NCBI GenBank assembly: GCA_020184695.1
Contig: JAANOX010000248.1
Span: forward strand, 186,001 to 250,000
Reading direction: 5' to 3'
From: Histomonas meleagridis 2922-C6/04-290x
Taxonomy: Eukaryota; Protista; Parabasalia
Length of the DNA: 64,000 nucleotides
Shown here: in pieces, positions 138 through 63,153 of the stretch
Numbering within the stretch: position 1 is the first letter of the stretch
Layout: each line of letters opens with the position of its first letter
Made by a program: the position numbers and the translations under genes
The notes under the pieces: generated by a model
Seen by the model: the letters and a program-made list of their open reading frames with translations, nothing else
Told to the model about the DNA's origin: nothing
Database searches by the model: none

Positions 138-2682
138 ATGACTGAGCCTTGTTCATCCTGCTTGAAATTCCTAATTGAGCTTGAGAAAAATATATTCAGT
201 TTAACAGAAGAAAACTTCAAGGCGTCCTCTAAAAAAGTATTGGAATTATTCGATTCAAACTATCCTTGTACATTTAATACTATTATAAGTAACATCGTTT
301 TTAATGCATTTTCATCACAAAAACAAGCATTTGATATTTCCATAAATTTTTTAAAAACACTTCAAACGAAAGAAGAAGAAATTAATCAAAATATAGTTAA
401 ATTAATGTCAATTTTTATCAAACGTATATCCAAAATTAACACACAAGAATCATATTATTTAATCGAGAAATTAATTGAACAAAATTTGGTTGATAAAAGT
501 ATTACCAAAAATATTCATTCAAAATATTTTGCTCATTATAAAACAGAAGAAGAAAACCAAAACAAAAATCATTCAGAATTTGAGTATGATAGAAATGATC
601 AAATAGAAAAATACTTTTTGGATAATTACAAAAAACTTTCAAAGAACAATTGGGAACTTCATAAGAAGTATGTTAAAGAAGGAGTTAATCCGAACGAAAT
701 AGCAAAAGTAATTCGATATGATGACATAGAAAACCTTCAAGAAATATCATCGCAAACAAATTTTGATTTTAACCAAACAATCGAACCATCACTTTATGAA
801 AGGTGTTCATTTATTAATCAAGAAAATGTTACATTAATTGATTATGCCGCATTCTTTGGATCAGTTAAATGTTTTAAATATTTACTTGTGAATAATGCAA
901 AAGTAGAAAACACAGGTAAATATGCAGTTGCAGGTAGAAATGAAGAAATCATTCATTTATGTGAACAATATCATTCATCATTTGAAGGTGCATATGAAAC
1001 AGCAATTGAATTTCATCAAAATGATATTTTTTATTATATTTATGAAAATAAATTAGAAAAAATACAATCAATGCCGAAAATGGATGAAGATAAAACAAAT
1101 GATTTGTTAAGTCTTTGTATTAAAAAAGATAATTATGAAATTTTAACATTTTTGGAAGAAAAAGGAATGAATTTTAATGTTGATAATATAAATGAAACAG
1201 CAATGAATGGAAATTTATATCTCGTTAAATATTTCCTTCAAAATAATCAAATACCAAAAAACATTTTGCATTTTGCTTCAGAATCAGGAAATGTTGAACT
1301 TGTGAAATATGTTGTGGAACAAAAAGGAATAGATGTTAATACAAAAACTATTCATTTGAATAATTTATAATATGTTTTAATAATTTGAAACAGCACTTCA
1401 TATAGCAGTTAGAAATAATAATATAGAAATAGTAAAATTACTTTTAGATAAAGGAATTGATGTTAATGCAAAAACTATTTATTTGAATAATTTAGAATAT
1501 GTTTTAATAATTTGAAATATGTTATAATAATTTGAAACAGCACTTCATATAGCAGTTAGAAATAATAATATCGAAATAGTAAAATTACTTTTAGATAAAG
1601 GAATTGATGTAAATGCAGAAAATATTTGTTTGAATAATTTTTTATATGTTTTAATAATTTGGAATATATTTTAATAATTTAAAATATGTTTTAATAATTT
1701 AATATATATTTTGATAATTTAGAATATGTTTTAATAATTTGAAACAGCACTTCATATAGCAGTTAGAAATAATAATATCGAAATCGTAAAATTACTTTTA
1801 GATAAAGAAGGAATTGATGTTAATGCAGAAACTATTTATTTGAATAATTTAGAATATGTTTTAATAATTTGAAATATGTTTTAATAATTTGGAACATGTT
1901 TTAATAATTTGAAACAGCACTTCATATAGCAGTTAAAAATAATAATATCGAAATCGTAAAATTACTTTTAGATAAAGAAGGAATTGATGTTAATGCAAAA
2001 AATATTCATTTGAATAATTTTGGATATGTTTTAATAATTTGGAACATGTTTTAATAATTTGAAACAGCACTTCATATAGCAGTTAGAAATAATAATATAG
2101 AAATAGTAAAATTACTTTTATATAAAGAAGGAATTGATGTTAATGCAAAAAATATTCATTTGAATAATTTTGGATATGTTTTAATAATTTGGAATATGTT
2201 TTAATAATTTTATATATGTTTTAATAATTTGAAACAGCACTTCATATAGCAGTTAAAAATAATAATATCGAAATCGTAAAATTACTTTTAGATAAAGAAG
2301 GAATTGATGTTAATGCAAAAAATATTCATTTGAATAATTTGGAATATGTTTTAATAATTTTATATATGTTTTAATAATTTTATATATGTTTTAATAATTT
2401 TATATATGTTTTAATAATTTAATATATATTTTGATAATTTAGAATATGTTATAATAATTTGAAACAGCACTTCATATAGCAGTTAAAAATAATAATATCG
2501 AAATCGTAAAATTACTTTTAGATAAAGAAGGAATTGATGTTAATGCAAAATATATTCATTTGAATAATTTGGAATATGTTTTAATATTTTAGAATATACA
2601 TTAATAATATTTGACTGCAATTCAAATTGCACGACAAGAAGGTTACACAGAAATAGTAAATTTACTTCGTGAAAAATTATAA
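138..2682 (+). CDS. Segmented DUF3447/ankyrin-repeat gene (locus A): continuous ORF 138-1370, then 8 ankyrin units separated by non-coding spacers
   Basis: ORF has trichomonad DUF3447-type motifs (IRYDDIENLQ, FDFNQTIEPSLYERCSF, LIDYAAFFGSVKCFKYLL). Units ETALHIAV(R/K)NNNIEIVKLLLDK(E)GIDVNA start at 1387, 1534, 1741, 1911, 2061, 2231, 2461; terminal unit LTAIQIARQEGYTEIVNLLREKL* at 2611-2682. The extent beyond 1370 assumes spacer removal. Confidence 0.8.
1350..2610 (+). repeat. Nested tandem repeat: 90/93-bp ankyrin unit alternating with arrays of a 20-bp minisatellite (consensus about GGAATATGTTTTAATAATTT)
   Basis: Direct reading. Spacer lengths 37, 57, 117, 77, 57, 77, 137, 57 nt all equal 17+20n. 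Confidence 0.95.
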
Positions 2683-5719: not shown

Positions 5720-7803
5720 ATGTGTTTCCAATTTTTAAGCAATATACAAAAAACAATTAGGGAGTTAAAAGAAGAAAATATTGATGAATCGATTGAAATA
5801 GTCAAAGCATTATATGATTCAAATTTCCCAAATTCTTTTTATATAATTTTAGCTCAAACAATTTTTTCAGTGATAATATCACATATAAATAACATTGATT
5901 TATATTTTCAATTTCTGAATGAAATCCAAAATATAAATGATCATTTTAATGATATTTTTATTCAATATCTTCTTCATTTAGATTCTCAAGAATCTAAATA
6001 TTTAATTGAAATGATGATTAATTTAAATCTTGCTGACATTGATCTTGTTCAAACTAAAAAGTCCCTTTATTTCGCACATTATAAAACGAATGTTGATATT
6101 GATAGGCTAATGCATAACCAGAATATTCCATTTGTTGAAACATTTAAAGACAATATTAAAAAACTTTCAAAAAATGATTGGGAACTTCACAAACGATTAA
6201 TTAAAGAAGGAATTAACTCAGATGAAATATCAAAAATAATTCGAAATGATGAAATAGGAAATCTTTTAGAAATATCATCGCAAACAAATTTTAATTTTAA
6301 TCAGACAATCGAACCATCACTTTATGAAAGATGTTCATTTGTTAATCAATATAATGTTAGATTAATTGATTATGCAGCATTCTTTGGATCAATTAAGTGT
6401 TTTAAATATTTACTTATGAATGGAGCTTATATAATTTTAACAGGTAAATATGCAGTTGCAGGCGGAAATTTAGAGATAATTCATTTATGCGAACATAATC
6501 ATTCATCATTTGAAGGTGCATATGAAGTTGCAATTGAATTCCATCGAAATGATATATTTTATTATCTTTATGAAATTGATATTATTAAATATATAAATTT
6601 AGAAGATTTAGCAAAGAATTGTATTTTATATAATAATTATGAAATTTTTCTGTTTTTAGAAGAAAAAGGTTTAAATGTTGAAGATGAATTAATCATTGAA
6701 GTAATAGAAAGTGGTAATTTATATCTTTTAAAGCATTTACTTGAAAAAAATGAATTGCCAAAAGAAATTTTAGTTTCAGCTATAAAATCAAGAAATATTG
6801 AAATTGTTCAATATGTTATTGATCTAAATGGGTTTTATAATGGAGATAAATATATATTTTTTATTATATTTAAGATTTGTTTTAAATAATTAATTTTTCA
6901 ATTTTTTAAATGGAATTTAATATTATTATTTAATACGCCATTTTTAATTGCTTGTAAACAAGGTTCCGTTGAAATTGCAAAATTGCTTCTTAAAAAAAAG
7001 TATAGTAAAATAGGTGAGAAAAATATTTCTAGAATGAATTTAATATAAATTTTTAATTTTTCGTGTTTAAAATATATATTATTTGCTAATGGACTTTATT
7101 TAGCATCAAAATATGGTCATATTAAAATGATTAAATTCCTTCTTAGGCATAAAATTGAAATTGCACTTAATTTCTATATAATCTTTTCAAAGATAATTTT
7201 TATTTTTTGATATTCATATTTTATTTTTCATGATTATTTTTCATGTTTTTTTCACCTCTTATGATTGCAATATTTTATGGTCATATAAAAGTTATAAAAA
7301 TATTACTCAAAGAAGGAATTTATATAAATGCTATTGAATTTTATTTAAAAAATTGTATGATTTAATCTAATTTTAACATATAGAAGACCACATCGTCATT
7401 ATATCCTTGCACCATTATTTCTTGCAACTGAAAATAATAATGCAAAAATAGTCAAATTACTTCTCAAGCAGAAAGGAATTGATGTTAATATTAAAAATTT
7501 TTATTTGTTTTATTTAATATTTATTTTAATAATTTGAAATTTCAAAATATTATTTGGAAATGATTTGAATAATATAAAACAGCACTTATGATAGCATCTG
7601 AAAAAGGTTACACAGAAATAGTTAAATTACTTCTTGAACATGAAGGAATTGATATTAATGCTAAAAATATTTATTTGTTTTATATAAAATTTATTTTTCA
7701 AAATAATATTTGGAAATTATTTAAATTATTTGACACAGCATTTACATTCGCATCTAAAAATGGTCATGAGGAAATAATTCAATTATTTCTTGAGCACAAA
7801 TAA
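5720..7803 (+). CDS. Segmented DUF3447/ankyrin gene (locus B): ORF 5720-6889 plus 6 spacer-separated ankyrin units
   Basis: DUF3447 motifs in ORF. Units NTPFLIAC.., ANGLYLAS.., SPLMIAI.., APLFLAT.., KTALMIAS.., DTAFTFAS..EHK* ending at 7803. Confidence 0.75.
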
Positions 7804-8545
7804 AAAGAAATTGATATTTAAGACATATTTATCATGAATATGACAGCAAGTGATTGATAGAATAACACCATGAAAAATAAATAGTGATATAATCTGATTT
7901 AAAATCTTTATGCCACCGGAAGCCACTTTTTTGATTATAATCGGTTTACTTAAATTTCCGAGTCACCAAGAAAAATACAAAGCAAGTAACCAGATTAGGA
8001 ATGAAAATCTTTGCATTTAATGCAAATATCCAGGCATAAATAAGTAAAGAAAAAATTTAATTTTGCTCTATCGTCAATTGCTTTTTTTAGAGATTATTTT
8101 GAAATATTTCAGCTTTAAAAGTCTCAAACAAAAACATCCAAAAAATTGTTTAACCAAAGGTAAGTTAGTTCAGTAATATTAAATTTTATTATAATGAGTT
8201 TCAATTTGAAATTTAAATCAAACTTGAATATATTTCTTTTTTCAAATTTTATAAAAAAAATGAATGAACTAGACAAACTTTTCCGTTTTATATATCCTTA
8301 TATTAATTAAATATATTACAGAAGAAATGTGTTACATGTCAATTATCGGCATTTTATTTTTATAGTTTTTTAAATGAACACATAGAAAAGATAAATTAAA
8401 CCTCTAAAATTCACAGTAAAACCTCCTTTATCATCCTGACTTTGACTAAAGTAACGTTTCTTTTTACTACAAATCTGGCTTTTTTAAGGGTAAATCAAGG
8501 GTAAATTTGAGAGCTATCATTTGATTCAAAAAAAGCAGTTTTAAT

Positions 8546-19132: not shown

Positions 19133-19400
19133 AACGGTTTATGATGTTAAAATAAACCGATGGTTGATAAGAATTTGCCTCACTTTGATTGAAGCATAAA
19201 AATTCGCTATGATGAATAAGTTTAAACAAAAAAATTATTAGTAAAGTTTAAAAGGATCGTTAATATTTTAAAGATGAAATTCATAAAATAAATTGAGTAT
19301 GTCTCTTAAAATAATTGTCTTTAGGAATTAGGGTGCCCCTAATGAGAATGAGTTATCACTTTTTTGTTGGACTTTTTTATTATATTTGATTAAAAGTTCT

Positions 19401-22328
19401 ATGGAAAAATCAAGCAATATGCAAATGCTGTATATGCTTGAGAATATATTGTTAAATATAAATAAAGAAAATATAGAATCTTCAATTGAAAAAACCATTC
19501 TTTTATTTGATAAAAATTATCCTTCATCTTTTAATAACATTATATGTTTATTAATTTTTTCATTATTTTCTTCACGAAAACAAGAAGCAGATATATATCT
19601 AAATTATTTACAATTATTAAATAACAAAGAAAAAGAAATTAATCCCAAAAATAATATCATTGATTTATTTTGTGAATTTATATGTAAAAAGAAAAAACAA
19701 GAATCATTTTATTTATTAGAAAAGATGATAAAACAACATATGGTTGATTCAAGTGTAACTGAAAATTTTACTTCTAAATATTTTGCACATTACAAAACTA
19801 AAAAAATTGGGAGTAAAATGTATTATGGCGATCCATTTTGTAGTGACTTTTTATATAACATTGAGAAACTTTCTGAAAATAATTGGGAACTACATTTAAA
19901 ATATATAAATGAAGGAGGTAATCTGTTAGAAATAACAAAAGTAATTCGTAATGATGATATTGGAAAATTACAAGAAATATCATCACAAGAAAACTTTGAT
20001 TTTGATCAAAAGATTAAACCATCACTATATGAAAAATTTTCTTTTATTAACAAAGAAGGTATATCATTAATTGATTATGCAGCTTTTTTTGTCTCAATAA
20101 AATGTTTTAAATATTTAATGTTAAATAATTGTAATCTTTATAATACAAGTAAATATGCAGTTGCAGGTGGAAATTTAGAAATAATTAAACTTTGTGAACA
20201 AAAGGATATTTCATTTAGTGGTGCATTTAAAACAGCAATTAAATTCCATAAAAATGATATATTTCATTATCTATATGAAAATATGTTTAATAAAATTAGT
20301 GATGAATTTGTTCCAATAAAAGTTCATAAGATATTAAATCGATTAAAATTTTCTTTAAATGATAAAATATTAAATTTTTTAGGTAAACTTTGTATTAAAA
20401 GTAATAACTATGAAATTCTTTCATTTTTAGAAAAAGAAGGAATGAAAGTTACTGCTTATGTTATTAATAAAGCTGCAAAAGTAGGGAATTTATTCCTGAC
20501 TAAATACTTTTTTGAGAAATATCATGTTCCAAAAAATATCTTAGCTGATGCTACACAATCAGAAAATATAGAAATTATTAATTATATTCTTAAACAAGAT
20601 GGAATCCTTGTTAATGCTAAAAGTTTTTCTTCATTTATTTTGATATTTATTTATATGTTTTTAATGTTTTAATATATATTTTGATGTTATTTTTTATTAT
20701 TTGATGTTTCACTTGTTTATGCAACTGAAGTTGGTAATATAGAAATCGTGAAAATTTTATTGAATTTACCTGATATTAATGTAAATACTAGAGGTAAGAT
20801 TTTTTTAGATAATTTAATATTTTATATTTCTACTTGGTGTTTATTTTAATATATTAAAGCAGCACTTATTTTTGCAACATTGAATAACAATATTGAAATT
20901 ACTAAATTACTTTTAAATCATAAAGATATAGATGTTAATAAAAAACATATTAATCTCAATTATTTATGATTTCATCAATTTGTATAATGTTTTTTTAAAT
21001 GCTTTAAAACTCCATTATTTTTTGCAATCCAACATAATTATCCAGAAATTTTTAATTTACTTCTGAATCACAACAAAATTGATTTAAATATAACCGGTAT
21101 TATATTAATTTTTTTGAAGTTTGTTTAAACTATTTAATGTTTTAGAATAATATTTAGAATTTATTTCATCTTTTTAGAACAGTTCTTATAGAAGCATGTA
21201 GAAAATCTCGTGAAGAAATGGTTAAATTACTTCTTGAACGAAAAGAAACCGATATAAACGTAAATGCAAGAGATGTTAATTAATTTTTATTAAATTTAAA
21301 TATAACATTTTGATATTTCATAAATATATTTGGAAATTCTTCAAATTATATTATACAGCACTTATGCATGCAATTAATGGAAGTTATGTAAAAATAATAA
21401 AATTACTTCTTCAAGTCGAAGGAATTGATGTTAATGTTAAAAATATTTTTTTGTTATATATAAAATTTGTTTATTTGTTTAATATTTTTTAGTTTTATAT
21501 GGAAATCAATCAAATTATTTTCAACAGCACTTATTTTAGCAGTTGAAAGAGGTTGTCTTAATATAGTTAAGTTACTTCTTGAGAAAAATGGAATTGATGT
21601 TAATATTAAAAATATTTTTATTGTTTTATTTGTTATTTATTTAACCTATATAAAATTTCAAAATAAAATTTGCTAATTATCTAAATTATTTAAATCAGCC
21701 ATAACTATAGCAATTGAACAGAAAAATTTAAATATATTTAAAGTACTTCTTGATCATAAAGGAATTGATATTAATTCTACAGATATTTTTTTGTATTATT
21801 TAAAGTATTTTATAATAATTTAAAATCTCAAAATAAAATTTGGAGTTTCTCCAAATATTTTAATACATTACTTATGATAGCAGTCAAAAAAGGTACTACT
21901 GATTTTGTTAAATTAATTCTTTTGAAAAATTATAAAGATATTAATAAGACAAATGTTTATTTGTTTCGTTTAATGTTAACATTAACATATTTCATGTTAC
22001 AAAAAATTATTTGGGAATTATTTTAAACATTTAAAACAGCACTTATGAAAGCAGTTTCAATTGGTAACAAAGAAATTGTGGAGTTACTTCTTGATCAAAA
22101 AGGAATTGATTCAAATATTGTGGCAGTTGTTTCACTGTATCTTGTGTTGATTTTATTATTATAATATTTCAAAATATTATTTGGAATATATTTAAATCAT
22201 TCGACACAGCGTTTTCTATTGCAGCTTCAAAATCTGCTCTGTTTATTTTGGGATTACTTATAAAAAGAAATGAAGGAAATGAAAAAACGTCAAATTTTAC
22301 AAGAGCATGTTTGGTTATACCAAAATAG
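19401..22328 (+). CDS. Segmented DUF3447/ankyrin gene (locus C): ORF 19401-20672 plus 10 spacer-separated ankyrin units
   Basis: DUF3447 motifs. Units DVSLVYAT, KAALIFAT, KTPLFFAI, RTVLIEAC, YTALMHAI, STALILAV, KSAITIAI, NTLLMIAV, KTALMKAV, DTAFSIAA..IPK* (stop 22326-22328). Confidence 0.8.
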
Positions 22329-22768
22329 TTTAGACTCAACATTTTTCATAAAAATACTATTTATTCCAAATATTAAGTGATTTTAATTTTTATTCTAACA
22401 TATTTTTAGATAGCACAACAGCTTGTATTCGAATTTAAATTGCGATCGCTATCATATCAATTTACTGTATTATTTTTCGGGGGTATGTACAATTCCTCTT
22501 ATTTCCAATTTTTTTCTATTCAATTGTTAATTAAAGTTTTAACATGAAAGAATTGCTTGATTGCATTTTGGTGCAATTTTTATTTATTATAAACTTTCCT
22601 TAATTTATAACATATATGTCCGTTTATGCAGAACTTAGACTTTGAGTAATTTTTTCCTTTTATTACATTTGTGGAAACTGTGGCACTTTTTATCCGTAAA
22701 AAATAAGGTGTGTGGGGAATCGAACCTGAGGCGCTATTAAATTTTTGTTTTGCTCGACCAAAATTTAA

Positions 22769-33886: not shown

Positions 33887-34911
33887 TGAAACGAACTTAC
33901 ACGTAAGTTCCCATGGGAATGTGCTATTAATTAACATAAATTGTTTATTTGATTAAACTTAATATTTGAAATATTTTTTATGAGGGAAAACAAGGTAAAG
34001 ATCAATTTACAAGTATTCTTATAAATGTTATTATAAATACATTATTTTATTAGATTAATAATATAAAACTGTAAGAGTTATTAGAAAAATAAATGCAAAA
34101 AGAAAATGTTAAGGTGGTGCTTTTGCTAAATAACACATGCAATATACATGTATATACATGAAGGATATTTACAATACAAATTTGAAGTATCAAAAGATTG
34201 AAGAATTCATTAACTTGTTATAAACTACCTTCTTATTTTTAGATAATTATTCCTGACTATTTTAATTTATCTGTTGGCCTTTAAGGAAGTAATATTATTT
34301 ATCATATTTTTAGAATAAAAAGATATTTGATAAGTTGGCATCTTCTCAAAATAAAATAAAAAAAGTCAATGTAAAAATGTAAAATATTATTTTGATATTT
34401 GTAATAATTTTTTCAATAAAACAAATATTTTTTTAGTGTTAATACCAATTTTTTTTTGTTCGAGAAGTAATTTAATTTTTTTCAAATTATCAAAATAAAT
34501 ATTAATTATAATAAATAAAAATTTTTTGCATTAATATCAATTTATACTTATTCAAGGAGTAATTTCAATGTTTATAAATTTTTGTTATAAACTTTTTAAA
34601 ATGATCTAACATCTTACTCGTTCTGAGATATTTATCATTGAAGCTTAACATTACATTTCTAATCTCTATGAACACAAAATGCAATAATTTAAAATATATT
34701 ACCAACAAATCCAAAATCAATCCTAAAACAAATCCTCAAAAAAACTTTTGAATTATTTTATACAAATTAAATTATCATTTGTATACACAAAACATAGAAA
34801 ACAAATACCAACACCAGTATAATTTATTGTAAAATCGTATTCTAATTGAACTGGTAAAATTCCTTTTTTAAATATAAAATAAGTTCCACAAAATCGTCTC
34901 GAAGATATCAT

Positions 34912-38785: not shown

Positions 38786-41700
38786 CTACGCTTTTTCGGT
38801 TTCATCCTTTTTCTCTTTCTCTTCGTTATGTCTATGCATTAACATGCAAGGGAAAAGGAAATGCCCAGCGCCGCAGTCACAAAATGCCGGACCACTACCT
38901 GACTGCGTTACGTCGTGGCCCTTGTGACATACCTTAGCGCATTCCTCGCAAAAACAGAAATTAATTCCTGAGTTATTCATGCAAGTTCTGCACCTATAAT
39001 ATCTATTGTGGTTTACCATTGTGTAACCAGTTTGCTCGAATGTGCAATGTCCAGGTATGAAAATGTCTCTGCGATTACCGGAATTCATCATCATTTCACT
39101 ATTTTGTTTTCTTCTTGCGATCAAATCAATAATTTCTTTCTTGTTCATTAAACCAGTTTCATTAAGAATTGTTTTCTCATTGTTATCTTTAATGTTGACA
39201 TCAATTTCCTTTTGTTCGAGTAACAATTTCACAATATCATTATGACAATTACGAGAAGCCTTTAATAAAGCAGTATCGAATTAACAAAATAAATTCCAAA
39301 TATTAATATGAAACAGTAAATCATATATATTAACATTAGTATCTCTTGCATTAATATCGATACCATTTTGTTCAAGAAGTAAATTAGCGATTTCGCTGTA
39401 ACCTAATTCAGACACAATCATTAAAGGTGTTTTAAATGAATATAATAAATTCCAAATGATATTTTGATATATTAAATCAATCGAATAAATAGTTTTAACA
39501 TTAACATCAATTCCTTCTTGTGTAATAAGTATTTTAACTATAACAACATAACAATTTAATACCGCTAATACAAATGCTGTATTTCGAAGTATTATAATAA
39601 AACTTCAGAACATTTAAATAAATATTTACACTTAAGCTATTAATACCTTTTTGTTTGATGAATAAGTCAATGATTTCTGCTTGTCCATTTAATAAACATA
39701 ATGTAAAAACAGTTTTAAATAATTCGGAAAAACTTCGAAAAGTCATATAAATGAACATCACTTGTATTGATTTCGATTCCTTCTTTTTCAAGTATTAATT
39801 TAATGATATCGATATGACTCTTTGAAGCTGCATGCATTAATGCTGTTTTATATATAATAAATGAACACCAAATATTTGAGTTAAACTTCAAATAATGAAG
39901 TTATATATTATCTCTTGCATTAATATCAACATTATTTTGGTCAAGAAGTAATTTAACAAGATCAGTATGACCATTTAATGCTACAATCATTAAAATTGTT
40001 AAAAATCACATAAAGAAACACCAAATATTATAAACAATTTCTATATTATTCAAATAGATATTATCTTTGATATTAATATCAACATTATCTTGTTCAAGAA
40101 GTAACTTAACTATATCCGGTTTATCATTTTTCAATGCTAAAATAAGTGCTGTCTTAAATACATTAAATAATTTCCAAATTAAATTTTGAATTTTCATTTG
40201 ATAAAAACAAATTCTAAATATAACAAATAAACATTTTTAATGTTAATATCAATTCCTTCGTGTTCAAGTAATAATTTAACTATTTCTGTACGGCCGAATT
40301 GTGCTGCATAAATTAATGCTGTTTGAAATAAAATGAATAAATTTTAAATATTTTTTAATAACATTATATTGACAAAACTAATATTAAGTAAAACAAATAA
40401 ATATTTTTAGCATTAACATCAATTCTTTCTTTTTCTAAAAGTAATTTAGTAATTTCTACACTTCCATTATACGCTGCAGACATTAAAGCTGTATAAAATC
40501 AACGAAATGAATTCCAAATATTATTTTGATATTTGAAATCAACAAAATCGATTTTATCTTTGTTGTTAACATCAATTCCATTTCGTTCAAGTAACATTTT
40601 CGCGATATCATTATTACAACATTTAATAGCCACAGAAAGAGCTGTATCAAAACTAACAAAAAAACTCCAAATCTTTCAAACAAATATTAAATCATTATAA
40701 CAAACATAAAATATTACATATAAATATCATTTGTTACATTAATATTAAGTTCTCCATGTTCAAGAAGTAACTTAACTACATCAGTATAACCATAACGAGC
40801 AGCAAAAAGTAATGGTGTGAAAAACATTTATAATAAACATCAAACATTTTTTAGAAACACGAAAAATACCTAAAAAACATCACCTCTCACATTAACATCA
40901 ACATTTTTATTCTGAAGAATTAACTTAGCGATTTCTTCGTAACCATTTCTTAATGCTAAAATAAGTGCTGTATCATATTTCTAAAATAAATTCCAAAAAT
41001 AATTCAAAAACTTTATGTAATTAAAACAAATTCTACATATAACAAATAAACACTTACTCCATTAACATTAATTCTTTCTTGTTCAAGTAATAATTTTGCA
41101 ATTTCTATTTCATTCTTTTTGATTGCCATAATAAGTGCTGATTCAAATAATAGAAACAAATTCCAAATTTAACATTGAAATTTTATATCATTAAAATTAA
41201 CTCTAAATATAACTTATAAACATTTGTTTGATTTATATCAATTCCTTCTTGTGCAAGAAGTAATTTTACTGTTTCCAAATAACCTTTTTTAGATGCTTTC
41301 ATTAATGATGTTTCAAATGATTTATATAAACATTAAATTATATAATCAAATTTTATGATTTTGTAAGTTTATGTTAATTCCTTTTTTCTCAAGTAAATCG
41401 AGCATTTGTTGATTACATCTTTTCAATTCATTAATAAGTGATTCTTGAAATCGTATAAATAAATTTCAAATATAATAAAGAAATTCGAAATGTTGAAATT
41501 ATACTTTAAACATTATAAATATATCTTATCAAAATTATTTGTTAGATTTTCTTGTTCAAGAAGTAACTTAAGGATTTCATTATGACGACTTTCCAATGAT
41601 TTCATAAGTGTTGATTTAATTATCAGGATTTAAGGATTCTGTGTGTCATATAATTTCATTGTATTTTCAATCGATAACTTGAGGTTTTCTTGGTTAAGAT

Positions 41701-44286: not shown

Positions 44287-44358
44287 GTCTCCGTAGTCTA
44301 ATGGTTAGAATAGGAGTTTAACACGCTCTTGACGGCAGTTCGATCCTGCCCGGAGACA
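44287..44358 (+). tRNA. tRNA-Val(AAC)
   Basis: Acceptor GTCTCCG/CGGAGAC+A; anticodon arm GGAGT-TTAACAC-GCTCT; T arm GGCAG-TTCGATC-CTGCC; 72 nt. Confidence 0.9.
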
Positions 44359-53141: not shown

Positions 53142-55820
53142 ATGCAGAAAAAATCAAATAGGGAATGCTATAAAAAAACATCATATCAATTCATGGAGCA
53201 ACTTGAAAATATTATATTTTCTTTAAGTGATGAAAATATCGGAGCAGCAATTCAATCAACATTAAATTTATATGATGTCCGTTTTTCATTTTCATATAAT
53301 CTTATTGTATCCCAATTAGTTTATTCTTCCTTTGTTTCTTTTGTAAATAATGAAAGTAGATGTTTTTTATATTTAATAGGAATTAATGAAAAAGAAAAAG
53401 AAAAGAAAAAAATTATAAATATATTTTATTGGTATCTTCTCCGATTGCAATCACAAGAATCAAAGTTTCTGCTTGAAAAAATGCTAGAACAGAATATGAT
53501 AGATGAAATCGAAAAGAAAAATGATAATTCTTTTTCTCATCAAAATTTATCTGATCAAACCAATAAAAGTAAAAACACTCAAAAATCTTCAAAAGATGAA
53601 TCAGAACTAAATAAAAAACAAACGCATGAAGGAGTTAATCAGTCTATTGTCGCTAAAGCAATTCGAAATGATGAAATAGAAAAACTTCAAGAAATTTCAA
53701 CAGAAACAAATTTCAATTTTAACCAAATAATTGAGCCATCACATTACGAAAAATGCACATATGTAAATAAAGAAAATGTTTCATTAATTGATTATGCAGC
53801 ATTTTTTGGGTCAATCAAATGTTTTAAATATTTATTATTAAATAATTCCAATATAGCAAATGCAGGTAAATATGCAATTGCAGGTGGAAATTCTGAAATT
53901 ATTCATTTATGCGAACAAAATCATTCATCATTTGAAGATGCTTATGAGATAGCAATTGAATTTCATCGGAATGATATCTTTCATTATTTGTATGAAAATA
54001 ACATTATCGAAATCAAAGATAAGATAAAACTTGGGAAAAAATGTATTAAATATAATAACTATGAACTTTTTTCATTTCTGGAAAAAGAAGGAATGAAAAT
54101 CAATGATTCCTTAATTAATGAAGCAGCAAGAAATGGTAATATATTCCTTACATTATGTTTTCTTGAGGAAAATAAATTACCTGATAATATTCTCGTTTCT
54201 TCTGCTGAATCAGGAAACATTGAACTTTTTAAATATATTCTTGAACAAGAAGGAATTGATATAAATGTTAAAAATGTTTTTTTAATGAATATAAATTTTA
54301 TTTCTTTAATTTCATGTTAATTAATCATATATGGATTTTATATTGTTTTTTTAGAACTGCACTTATGATGGCATCTGAAAAAAATGATACTGAAATTGTG
54401 AAATTATTGCTAGAATTAAAAGGAATAGATGTCAATGCTAAAGATGTTTTCTGGTTTGATTAAATTTTTGTTTTATATATTTGAAATTTCAATACAATAT
54501 TTGGAATTTAAATATATCTGATGAAACAGCACTTATTATTGCTTCTTCAAAAGGGAATATTGAGACAATCAAATTACTTCTTCAACATAAGAAAACTGAT
54601 ATTAATTTGAAGAATATTTTTTTGTTAATTATAAAGTTTATCATTAAAATAAGAAATTTCAAATGTATAAATGGTGTTTTACTAATTAATTCACAACACC
54701 GCTTATGTTGTCATGCATCTCAGGAGCAAATGATATTGTTCGATTACTTCTTGATCAAAAAGGAATTGATGTTAACTTAAAAAACATTTTTTTATTTCAA
54801 TTAAAGTTTATTTTACTGAAATAATGTTAAATATTAATTTTCGGTGTTTATTTTTACTATTTTGGACAAGTATAATGCTTGCATGTCGATATAACCATAT
54901 TGAAATTGTAAAAATGTTAGTTCTTAAAAAAGGTATAGATGTTAATTTGAAAAACATTTTTTAATATAATTTTTTGTTTATTCAAAATATTTAATGTTAA
55001 CAAAATACATTTAATATTTATTTCATTTTCTTTGGACAGCATTAATGTATGCATGTAATAACTCAAATCCTGATATGATAAAATTACTACTCGAAAAGAA
55101 AGGAATAGACCTCAGTACAAAAAATATTTATTTAATTAAATTAATATTTACAAATGATTTTTGGTGTATATAACCAAAATTTGGAATTTTTTCAACAAAT
55201 TTTCAATGGCACTAATGTGGGCATGTTCAAATGATCAACTTGAAATTGTTCAACTTTTAATTGAACGAAAAGTTAGTGTTAATGTTAAAGATATTTATTT
55301 ATATTTATTTAATGTTTCATTATATTTTTTTATGTTTCAAAATTATATTTGGTGTATTTTTATATTATTTAAAACAGCTTTAATGTATGCATGTACAAAA
55401 GAAAATATTCCAATTATAAAATTACTTTTAAGTCAAAAAGGTATTGATATTAATGCAACTGATGTTTTTTAATGAGATTTAATGTTTTAAAATGATTCTT
55501 AATGTTCTTTTCGTTGATTAACTGCTTAAATTTAATTTTTGGTATTTGTTGAATTGTTTTTGGACAGCTTTAATATATGCTTGTTCAATAGGTAACACTC
55601 AAGTGGTAGAATTACTTCTTGAACAAAAAGGAATTGATACAAATATAAGAGGAATATATTTAAATTATTTAATGTTATTTTTATGTTTCTGATGTTTGAA
55701 AATATAATTTGGAATATTATAAAAGTTATTCGTACAGCTTTAATGTGGGCAAGCAAATTTGGTTACGAAGATATTGTTAATTTAATACTAGAAAAAGAAA
55801 AAATTGTAAATCAGACATAA
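53142..55820 (+). CDS. Segmented DUF3447/ankyrin gene (locus E): ORF to 54320 plus 9 spacer-separated ankyrin units
   Basis: DUF3447 motifs. Units RTALMMAS, ETALIIAS, TTPLMLSC, WTSIMLAC, WTALMYAC, SMALMWAC, KTALMYAC, WTALIYAC, RTALMWAS..NQT* (stop 55818-55820). Confidence 0.8.
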
Positions 55821-62689: not shown

Positions 62690-62970
62690 TTAAATAATGA
62701 CTTCATAAATTCAATTTCTAATGTTAATAATTTGAAGAACTTTCAAAGGCAATTAATTAAAGAATGAGTTAATCCATCTGAGATTGCAAAAATAATTCGA
62801 AATGTTGAAATAGAAAAACTTCAAGAAAAATCAACGCATAAAAATTTTGATCTTATTCAAACAATTGAACCATCACTTAATAAAAGAAGATCATTTATTA
62901 ATGATTATAATCATTATAATGTTAAAGATATTTATTTGTTTTATTTGATACTTATTTCAAAATTTTAAGG
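62690..62970 (+). pseudogene. Relic of the DUF3447/ankyrin family
   Basis: Reads LIKE*VNPSEIAKIIRN.EIEKLQE..NFD..QTIEPSL, fused directly to NVKDIYLF (AAAGATATTTATTTGTTTT). Confidence 0.75.
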
Positions 62971-63153
62971 ATCGCGTCCGATTGTAAAATACTTCCTGTA
63001 CTTTTACAAAAAAATTTTTTTTGCTATTTTCAACAAACTCACAAAGATGGTTATTAGTTATTTTTTGCGGCCGAACCCCTCCAAGTTCCACATAAGGTCC
63101 AAAAAGGAAAAAGTGCCGATCCAAAAAGTTCAAAGAGGCCGTTAATAGATCGA

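Follow-up and report, generated by a model that had tools for sequence, protein, structure and literature searches.

Spacers in an ankyrin-repeat gene of Histomonas meleagridis leave the RNA in multiples of 17 nt and probably contribute single codons to the mRNA

The DNA analyzed here (the window) comprises 64,000 nt of Histomonas meleagridis 2922-C6/04-290x (contig JAANOX010000248.1, positions 186,001 to 250,000, of assembly GCA_020184695.1). It is AT-rich (GC 20-36%) and has long open reading frames (ORFs) in the standard code without introns. The window encodes an XRN1 gene and DUF3447/ankyrin-repeat proteins (Pfam), a combination typical of parabasalids. The nearest named relatives of the ankyrin N-terminal domains are proteins of H. 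meleagridis. We focus on the ankyrin-repeat gene at 19386-22328 (plus strand), in which a 413-codon N-terminal part precedes ten 90-nt ankyrin units. The units are set apart by AT-rich spacers of ~60 or 80 nt (J1 to J10; Table 1) that shift the reading frame and carry stops. The spacers are removed at the RNA level in multiples of 17 nt. We conclude that they are probably series of 17-nt, rarely 18-nt, mini-introns alternating with one-codon exons that are kept in the mRNA.

Table 1. Features of the ankyrin gene at 19386-22328 and arrays of the same kind in the window. Triplets are those predicted to be kept; the last column gives the end of the left and the start of the right RNA contig piece and the number of unaligned letters between them ("as predicted" refers to one kept codon per module).
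Feature	Position	Strand	Composition or basis	RNA contigs
N-terminal ORF (DUF3447 and Ank), up to the first spacer	19386..20624	+	ORF list; Pfam DUF3447, Ank_2	
J1, 81 nt	20625..20705	+	elements 20625-41, 20645-62 (18 nt), 20666-82, 20686-702; gat, aat, gat, gat (D-N-D-D)	20624 / 20702, 8 letters, as predicted
J2	20799..20858	+	three modules after the exon extension aag; aat, ggt, aaa (N-G-K)	20799 / 20855, 4 letters, as predicted
J3	20949..21008	+	three modules, no GG; atg, aat, aaa	20953 / 21004, 0 letters
J4	21099..21178	+	four modules; gaa, aat, aga, aga (E-N-R-R)	21098 / 21176, 9 letters, as predicted
J5	21275..21354	+	four modules; aaa, gat, gga, tat (K-D-G-Y); TTTGGAA at 21329-21335	21274 / 21352, 9 letters
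J6, 79 nt	21445..21523	+	second module 19 nt (16-nt element)	pieces 21352/21418-21613, "17 gaps"
J7, 81 nt	21614..21694	+	first element 18 nt; gtt, aaa, gct, aaa (V-K-A-K)	21613 / 21691, 8 letters, as predicted
J8	21785..21864	+	aaa, aaa, gga, aat (K-K-G-N)	joint 21785>21862 in three RNA runs, in no DNA-run contig; 8 letters, as predicted
J9, 81 nt	21955..22035	+	second element 18 nt; aat, cat, ggg, aaa (N-H-G-K)	joint 21954>22033 in three RNA runs, not in the DNA run; 9 letters, as predicted
J10	22126..22205	+	tgt, aat, gga, gac (C-N-G-D); TTTCAAA-N6-TTTGGAA at 22167-22186	joint 22125>22203 in two RNA runs, not in the DNA run; 9 letters, as predicted
Last exon, stop codon at its end	22206..22328	+	translation	contig 22203-22600
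Lone 17-nt element in the 3' untranslated region (UTR)	22359..22375	+	ATTTATTCCAAATATTA	missing from the X3 RNA contig, present in X5
Further array	1260-2550			
Further array	6935-7810			
Further array	39185-41311	-		
Further array	54186-55805			

Ankyrin repeats have 33-34 residues with a T-A/P-L-x-x-A motif, a helix pair and a hairpin x-x-G-x, and the product of the gene belongs to this class. Forty-five units score above the listing threshold, and 44 of them were kept. An original prediction from the sequence had described a fixed signal at the 3' end of the spacers, TTTCAAA-N6-TTTGGAA-N13-TTT-NNN-ACA, where ACA is the Thr codon of the following T-A-L. We aligned 36 spacers of 60-150 nt on this Thr codon. 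The position of GG, which the prediction had counted in 28 of 48 spacers, is indeed exact: it lies at -23/-22, with G in 29 and 29 of the 36 alignable spacers, in DNA with a G frequency of only 0.095 (9.5%). T occupies -26/-25/-24 in 34, 32 and 35 spacers, a purine (R) -20 in 35, and T -6/-5/-4 in 32, 31 and 34. Six of the ten spacers in 20625-22205 carry a GG triplet (ggt, gga, gga, gga, ggg, gga), and the other four have gat, aat, aga and gct at this place, which match the near variants already listed. Length change is restricted to the 5' half, again as foreseen; every 19- or 21-nt module is the first or second of its spacer, and the last two 20-nt blocks (40 nt) are free of indels.

The pattern is repeated at 20-nt intervals from one end of the spacer to the other, which the original prediction had missed. 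Conserved columns repeat with this period (T at -4/-24/-44, R at -20/-40/-60, A at -7/-27/-47), and each spacer is a tandem of 20-nt modules composed of a 17-nt T-rich element (RTTT....ATTT) and a purine-rich triplet. The element has the consensus R-T-T-T-(A/G)-T-T-T-N-A-A-T-N-A-T-T-T. Among 96 modules, its first position (x1) is A in 64, G in 28 and T in 4, x2 is T in 90, x14 is A in 79, and x15-17 are T in 85, 80 and 91. G is found at the last element position in none of the 96. The A at x14 is the best conserved internal base (82% of modules), and an A at x10/x11, -8/-7 from the 3' end, occurs in ~60%, the first modules mostly being without it. After a preceding A, x1 is A rather than G (32 vs 7, Fisher p = 0.012). 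Furthermore, 32 of 38 spacer lengths fit 20n+3k. A greedy module decoder run over the whole gene placed false modules in AT-rich exons and was dropped for parsing between repeat units defined by hidden Markov models.

Pairwise identity between paralogues is 71% at the module ends and 51% at third codon positions of the flanking exons, with the module middles (50%) resembling the latter. Because the module ends are more alike than exon third positions, the signal exceeds shared recent ancestry, in line with the expectation that conservation would surpass the level of recent duplication. At locus A (1350-2463), nearly identical repeats are separated by a single kind of 20-nt module (ATATGTTTTAATAATTT plus a codon), present in 2 to 7 copies. 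Locus A is thus a minisatellite of variable module number that would yield loops of 2-7 residues (IE, REE, WGE, FGKNRE, GYYYNRE).

Evidence from RNA comes from assembled Logan contigs of one organism over 20000-22600, with three runs labeled RNA (X3, X5, X6) and one labeled DNA (X1). RNA contigs span 20422 into the spliced repeats of the gene. Their pieces stop at the end of a repeat and resume three bases ahead of the following Thr codon, and the 8-9 intervening letters (4 and 0 at the short spacers) fit neither side. Eight of the ten spacers are fully missing from the RNA contigs. In contrast, an X1 contig (20423-21447) is unbroken through J1-J5 with no mismatch, and the joints of J8-J10, present in two or three RNA runs, occur in no X1 contig. 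Other members of the family behave alike. At 54356-55733, a locus of repeats and spacers only, the DNA runs hold 0.99 of the sampled 31-mers and the RNA runs 0.25-0.31, where exons alone would give 0.37. Loose contig ends before ACAGCACTT carry hairpin codons in the RNA runs family-wide (e.g. ...AATAAAGGAGA) but module sequence in the DNA run (...TTTGGAAATTATTTAAAATATTTAAT). The comparison of RNA with DNA contigs supports removal of the spacers at the RNA level. Two further runs from the samples of the genome study (X4 and X8, labeled "DNA?") hold only 0.19-0.44 of the 31-mers, as RNA runs do, and may be RNA libraries or low-coverage DNA.

These contigs bear on other fates of the spacers that had been considered. 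The spacers could stay in the mRNA and be skipped by ribosomal bypass, or could leave the DNA in some nuclei as the internal eliminated sequences (IES) of ciliates do. Nothing beyond the broken genomic frames speaks for either, and we give this explanation next to no chance: RNA contigs lack the spacers that DNA contigs retain, with 31-mer shares of ~0.3 and 0.99. Bypass is superfluous where the RNA is already free of the spacers, eight of which are entirely gone from it. The suggested rearrangement of the DNA at sites resembling recombination signal sequences is contradicted by DNA-run contigs that continue through the spacers without joints. IES-like elimination likewise disagrees with the absence of the J8-J10 joints from X1 and with the near-complete 31-mers of the locus at 54356-55733 in DNA runs. 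Translation of the spacers under another genetic code was rejected, as frames shift, all three stops are present and neighboring ORFs are long and standard. A 40-nt GT...AG intron inside the spacer is excluded by the coordinates of the RNA pieces.

The lengths removed follow a simple arithmetic. The net removal is 68 nt (4 x 17) at J4, J5, J8 and J10, and 51 nt (3 x 17) at J2. It is 69 nt at J1, J7 and J9, the 81-nt spacers, each of which has one 21-nt module with an 18-nt element. The excision unit is therefore 17 nt, with 18 nt tolerated three times, and the register is fixed at both outer ends of each spacer. J3 loses 50 nt, one base off, and J6 only 17 nt. The joined forms could in principle be artefacts, namely hops between paralogues in the de Bruijn graph, template switching by reverse transcriptase, or transcripts of unsegmented paralogues. 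Logan contigs, the size of the family and many paralogue-hopping joints in the same data lend this some plausibility. However, the same joints recur in three RNA runs with unique flanks and 0-2 mismatches and are absent from DNA-run contigs, and the products are in frame with canonical hairpins. Moreover, slippage or template switching in a 20-nt repeat would delete 20n nt, and the observed deletions are of 17n nt. We regard an artefactual origin as very improbable.

Two models of which bases remain were compared: for each, the alignment of the mRNA it predicts was simulated by extending exact matches from the two flanks. In model A, the last three bases of each module are kept. It gives the left end, the right start and the unaligned letters correctly at 8 of 9 junctions, accounts for the odd pattern at J2 (Table 1), and has the right piece begin one base early at the three junctions whose Gly-position codon ends in T. 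In model B, two introns (~51 nt and 17 nt) surround one 9-nt micro-exon encoding x-Phe-Gly, e.g. ATA TTT GGA. The two models share the total removed (51+17=68) and the 9 unaligned letters, and model B, too, preserves the frame and positions Gly two residues ahead of Thr; it is equally compatible with the separate loss of 17 nt in J6. Its piece ends, however, are right at only 4 of 9 junctions. It creates false chance extensions at J1, J4 and J7 and fails at J2, where it does not yield the end at 20799 and the 4 letters. TAA stands in frame before TTT in 9 of 38 spacers, and the 20-nt periodicity of the 5' half is left unexplained. The single 9-nt micro-exon was rejected on the simulated alignment, and we consider it very unlikely.

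The triplets kept under model A are coding in character. There are no stops among the 96, with ~7 expected among the 12 that begin with T, and they are purine-rich (AAT, GAA, GGA, AAA, AGA) in a context of 52% T. The decoded loops include KDGY, KKGN, NHGK, CNGD, NGK, KNGS, RKGE and NEGK. Most decoded spacers place Gly in the second-to-last loop position, two residues before Thr. An unsegmented T. foetus homologue reads K-D-E-K-G-K-T-P-L at the loop place. Protein database searches and look-ups yielded no spliced product, and P0021 is an unrelated unsegmented protein.

According to this reading of one kept codon per module, the beta-hairpin loop of the ankyrin repeat (x-N/D/K-G-x before T-A-L) would be encoded codon by codon, each module giving up 17 nt and retaining 3. 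TTTGGAA would then comprise the last three bases of mini-intron 3, the Gly codon GGA and the first base (R) of mini-intron 4; N13 and TTT would be the remainder of the 17-nt mini-intron 4, NNN the last loop codon and ACA the Thr codon. The heptamer is thus not a single signal, as its TTT and final A belong to the termini of two neighboring mini-introns, and T(T/A)(T/C), previously taken for a codon, corresponds to the final three bases of a 17-nt element. The notion of a cis-acting ruler survives in part: the geometry is fixed and ruler-like, but the GG(A/T) within it is a kept Gly codon. The third-base wobble and the variants GAT, AAT, AGA, GCT and AAA follow from the identity of GG(A/T/G) as this codon, and the variants decode to Asp, Asn, Arg, Ala and Lys, residues that a hairpin turn can accommodate. 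Because each module removes 17 nt and retains 3, the frame is preserved whatever their number, and 17+3 modules in tandem account for spacer lengths of 40 to 140 nt in 20-nt steps.

Single elements can be removed independently. J6 is kept in the X3 and X5 RNA contigs except for 17 nt, and position 21460, inside its first element, is covered by RNA contigs. The lone element in the 3' UTR has a position weight matrix score of 7.7, inside the range of true modules, and its differing presence in X3 and X5 suggests that excision also takes place outside ankyrin loops and varies between samples.

Several points weigh against mini-introns alternating with one-codon exons. First, the RNA evidence consists of assembled contigs rather than reads, and the kinds of run are marked "RNA?" or "DNA?", i.e. 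guessed. Second, J3 is the only junction that departs from one codon per module, by one base; 50 instead of 51 nt are missing, so that the assembled transcript shifts frame and runs into a stop. The J6 transcript retains three of its four elements. J3 and J6 could reflect either imperfect processing or a decaying gene copy. Third, the identity of the internal kept codons is deduced from counts, terminal letters and analogy between modules, and the same cut register is presumed for every internal module. Fourth, the RT...TT termini match no known splicing chemistry, and a spliceosome would face steric difficulty with three-base exons between 17-nt introns.

The original prediction had also drawn a 7-bp stem between TTTCAAA and TTTGGAA. 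The TTTCAAA arm is present at the places named for it (22167, 7697, 55335 and, on the minus strand, 40530), and 16 of 36 spacers allow a stem of 6-7 pairs, but the two arms do not covary: 162 paired cells compare with 163 +/- 4 when partners are shuffled among sequences. The spacers have no common fold, as their minimum free energy structures differ (mean z-score -0.66), and the top mutual-information column pairs contain no Watson-Crick pairs and reflect module subtypes. TTTCAAA corresponds to positions 2-8 of mini-intron 3, in which C at position 5 is enriched (16/36). This third mini-intron, before the Gly codon (e.g. 22166-22182, 21655-21671, 7539-7555), has a consensus of its own (ATTTCAAAAT...), which recurs in a metagenome scaffold (L001) and does not covary with the Gly codon.

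The stem bears on a reading of each spacer as one non-canonical intron of ~77 nt, whose 3' ruler signal and TTTCAAA-N6-TTTGGAA hairpin are read by a nuclease or by branch-point machinery. The loss of the spacer from RNA, the conserved motif and distance, and the drawable pairs agree with it. The 8-9 letters per 80-nt spacer that match neither flank indicate, however, that the spacer does not leave in one piece, and the lack of covariation, the weak folding z-score and the wobble of GG in the manner of a Gly codon also oppose it. We judge the chance of such a single intron to be slim indeed.

The elements lack the defining features of U2-type, trichomonad, U12-type and IRE1-type introns. A U2-type 5' GT is not the rule (of 96 modules, 28 begin with G, 64 with A and 4 with T, and 90 have T at x2), and instead of a 3' AG, T stands at the penultimate position in 80 modules and at the last in 91. 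The trichomonad intron motif (GTAYGT-like; (A/T)CTAAC-ACAG) has a single match, which carries 2 mismatches and lies outside the arrays; this is below chance expectation. U12-type (AT-AC) introns have 5' RTATCCTT, the branch site TCCTTAAC and 3' AC or AG. They share with the elements no more than R at +1 and T at +2; the element consensus is RTTTATTT, with 3' TT and almost no C. No conserved C or G stands at or near either cut site, as the CNG/CNGN loops cut by IRE1 would have. Euglenid introns pair their ends and are variable in length; here length is fixed at 17 (18), and no columns covary in Watson-Crick fashion. A bulge-helix-bulge comprises two 3-nt bulges with the cut sites and a 4-bp helix between them. 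The spacers have no shared fold and no complementary covarying pairs, although no dedicated bulge-helix-bulge search was run.

The excision may be carried out by a divergent, spliceosome-like, intron-defined and length-constrained process that reads the RTTT and ATTT termini. The A at -8/-7 lies at the trichomonad branch-to-acceptor distance, a weak hint; the preference for A at x1 after a preceding A is another. We lean slightly, and weakly, towards such spliceosome-like excision, an endonuclease-plus-ligase route being nearly as likely. It is possible, and we offer this tentatively, that the family reveals a new non-spliceosomal excision-and-ligation system that measures ~17 nt between RTTT and ATTT, with elements one codon apart and a 20-nt minisatellite that resizes the loops in frame.

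Other parts of the window contain traces of the module. In an isolated remnant at 62910-62975, ...aat gtt aaa gat is followed by two modules (kept gat, aag) and unrelated sequence; the remnant is probably a truncated family member. High-scoring modules outside the parsed arrays are found on the minus strand at 34430-34520, adjoining a weak ankyrin unit at 34518, and at 41330-41485, upstream of the 16-unit array. A tRNA-Val(AAC) gene (44287-44358) is the only Rfam or ARAGORN match in the window.

The same modules are found in H. meleagridis assembly GCA_020186115.1 (L002) and in a metagenome scaffold of the European Nucleotide Archive (L001). An argument from cross-species conservation was discarded: L002 is probably from the window's own species and thus not independent, and only L001 may be another organism. 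An annotated protein of L002 ("caskin", P0013; 4001-5521) ends within the first spacer, a few bases beyond the first repeat. Public gene models of the ankyrin family, such as this one, are shortened because annotation stops in the first spacer.

If confirmed, the elements would rank with the shortest known intervening sequences and would be the first family to have RT...TT termini; the genes would also be the first in which entire protein loops are spelled out by consecutive single-codon exons. Pipelines that filter for GT-AG motifs would never detect RT...TT junctions. The system would probe the lower size limits of exon and intron recognition, and the Histomonas lineage may turn out to have a novel enzyme for RNA processing or a spliceosome that is strongly altered. 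The 17+3 arithmetic allows loops to vary in length in frame, which could diversify a surface or interaction family of this poultry parasite.

Full-text literature searches did not return a description of single codons placed between tiny introns that are not GT-AG. The genome paper on two strains of H. meleagridis reports 28.7% GC and few introns, with no gene having more than one; ankyrin genes are not mentioned in it (PMC8529796). The T. vaginalis census, in which junctions were motif-filtered, contains only GT-AG introns of at least 23 nt, with a maximum of one per gene, or two in T. stableri (PMC12316389). Type B introns of these trichomonads measure 23-28 nt and have GT...AG ends and an extended 5' motif; their (T)CTAAC branch site is fused with the 3' end (PMC12316389). 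The analogy drawn originally with uniformly short trichomonad introns is fair. Both occur in parabasalid hosts, are very short and nearly uniform in length with a T-rich body, lie in UTRs as well, and leave scant room between branch site and 3' end. The Histomonas elements differ in their length of 17 nt, their RT...TT termini, their dozens of copies per gene and the single codons between them.

Introns of 15-16 nt in Stentor and 18-21 nt in the Bigelowiella nucleomorph are cited in PMC12316389 as the smallest known spliceosomal introns. They resemble the Histomonas elements in size class and strict length. These introns are GT-AG, are spread over ordinary exons and do not stand in tandem with 3-nt exons. 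Non-conventional introns of euglenids are likewise removed from RNA, lack GT-AG and have borders of variable sequence. Their length is variable and pairing between the two ends defines them, whereas the Histomonas elements have a fixed length with no end pairing or covariation found. Bulge-helix-bulge introns of tRNA and archaea, together with the 26-nt introns of HAC1/XBP1 cut by IRE1, share small size, independence from GT-AG and cuts set by geometry instead of local sequence. In contrast to these endonuclease-ligase introns, the Histomonas elements are nearly free of G and C, and neither a bulge-helix-bulge fold nor CNGNNG loops are evident. Finally, the 3-nt micro-exons of animals and plants also have a single codon serving as an exon. 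Few occur in any one gene, and the introns on either side are long and canonical, whereas in Histomonas three to seven follow one another at 20-nt spacing.

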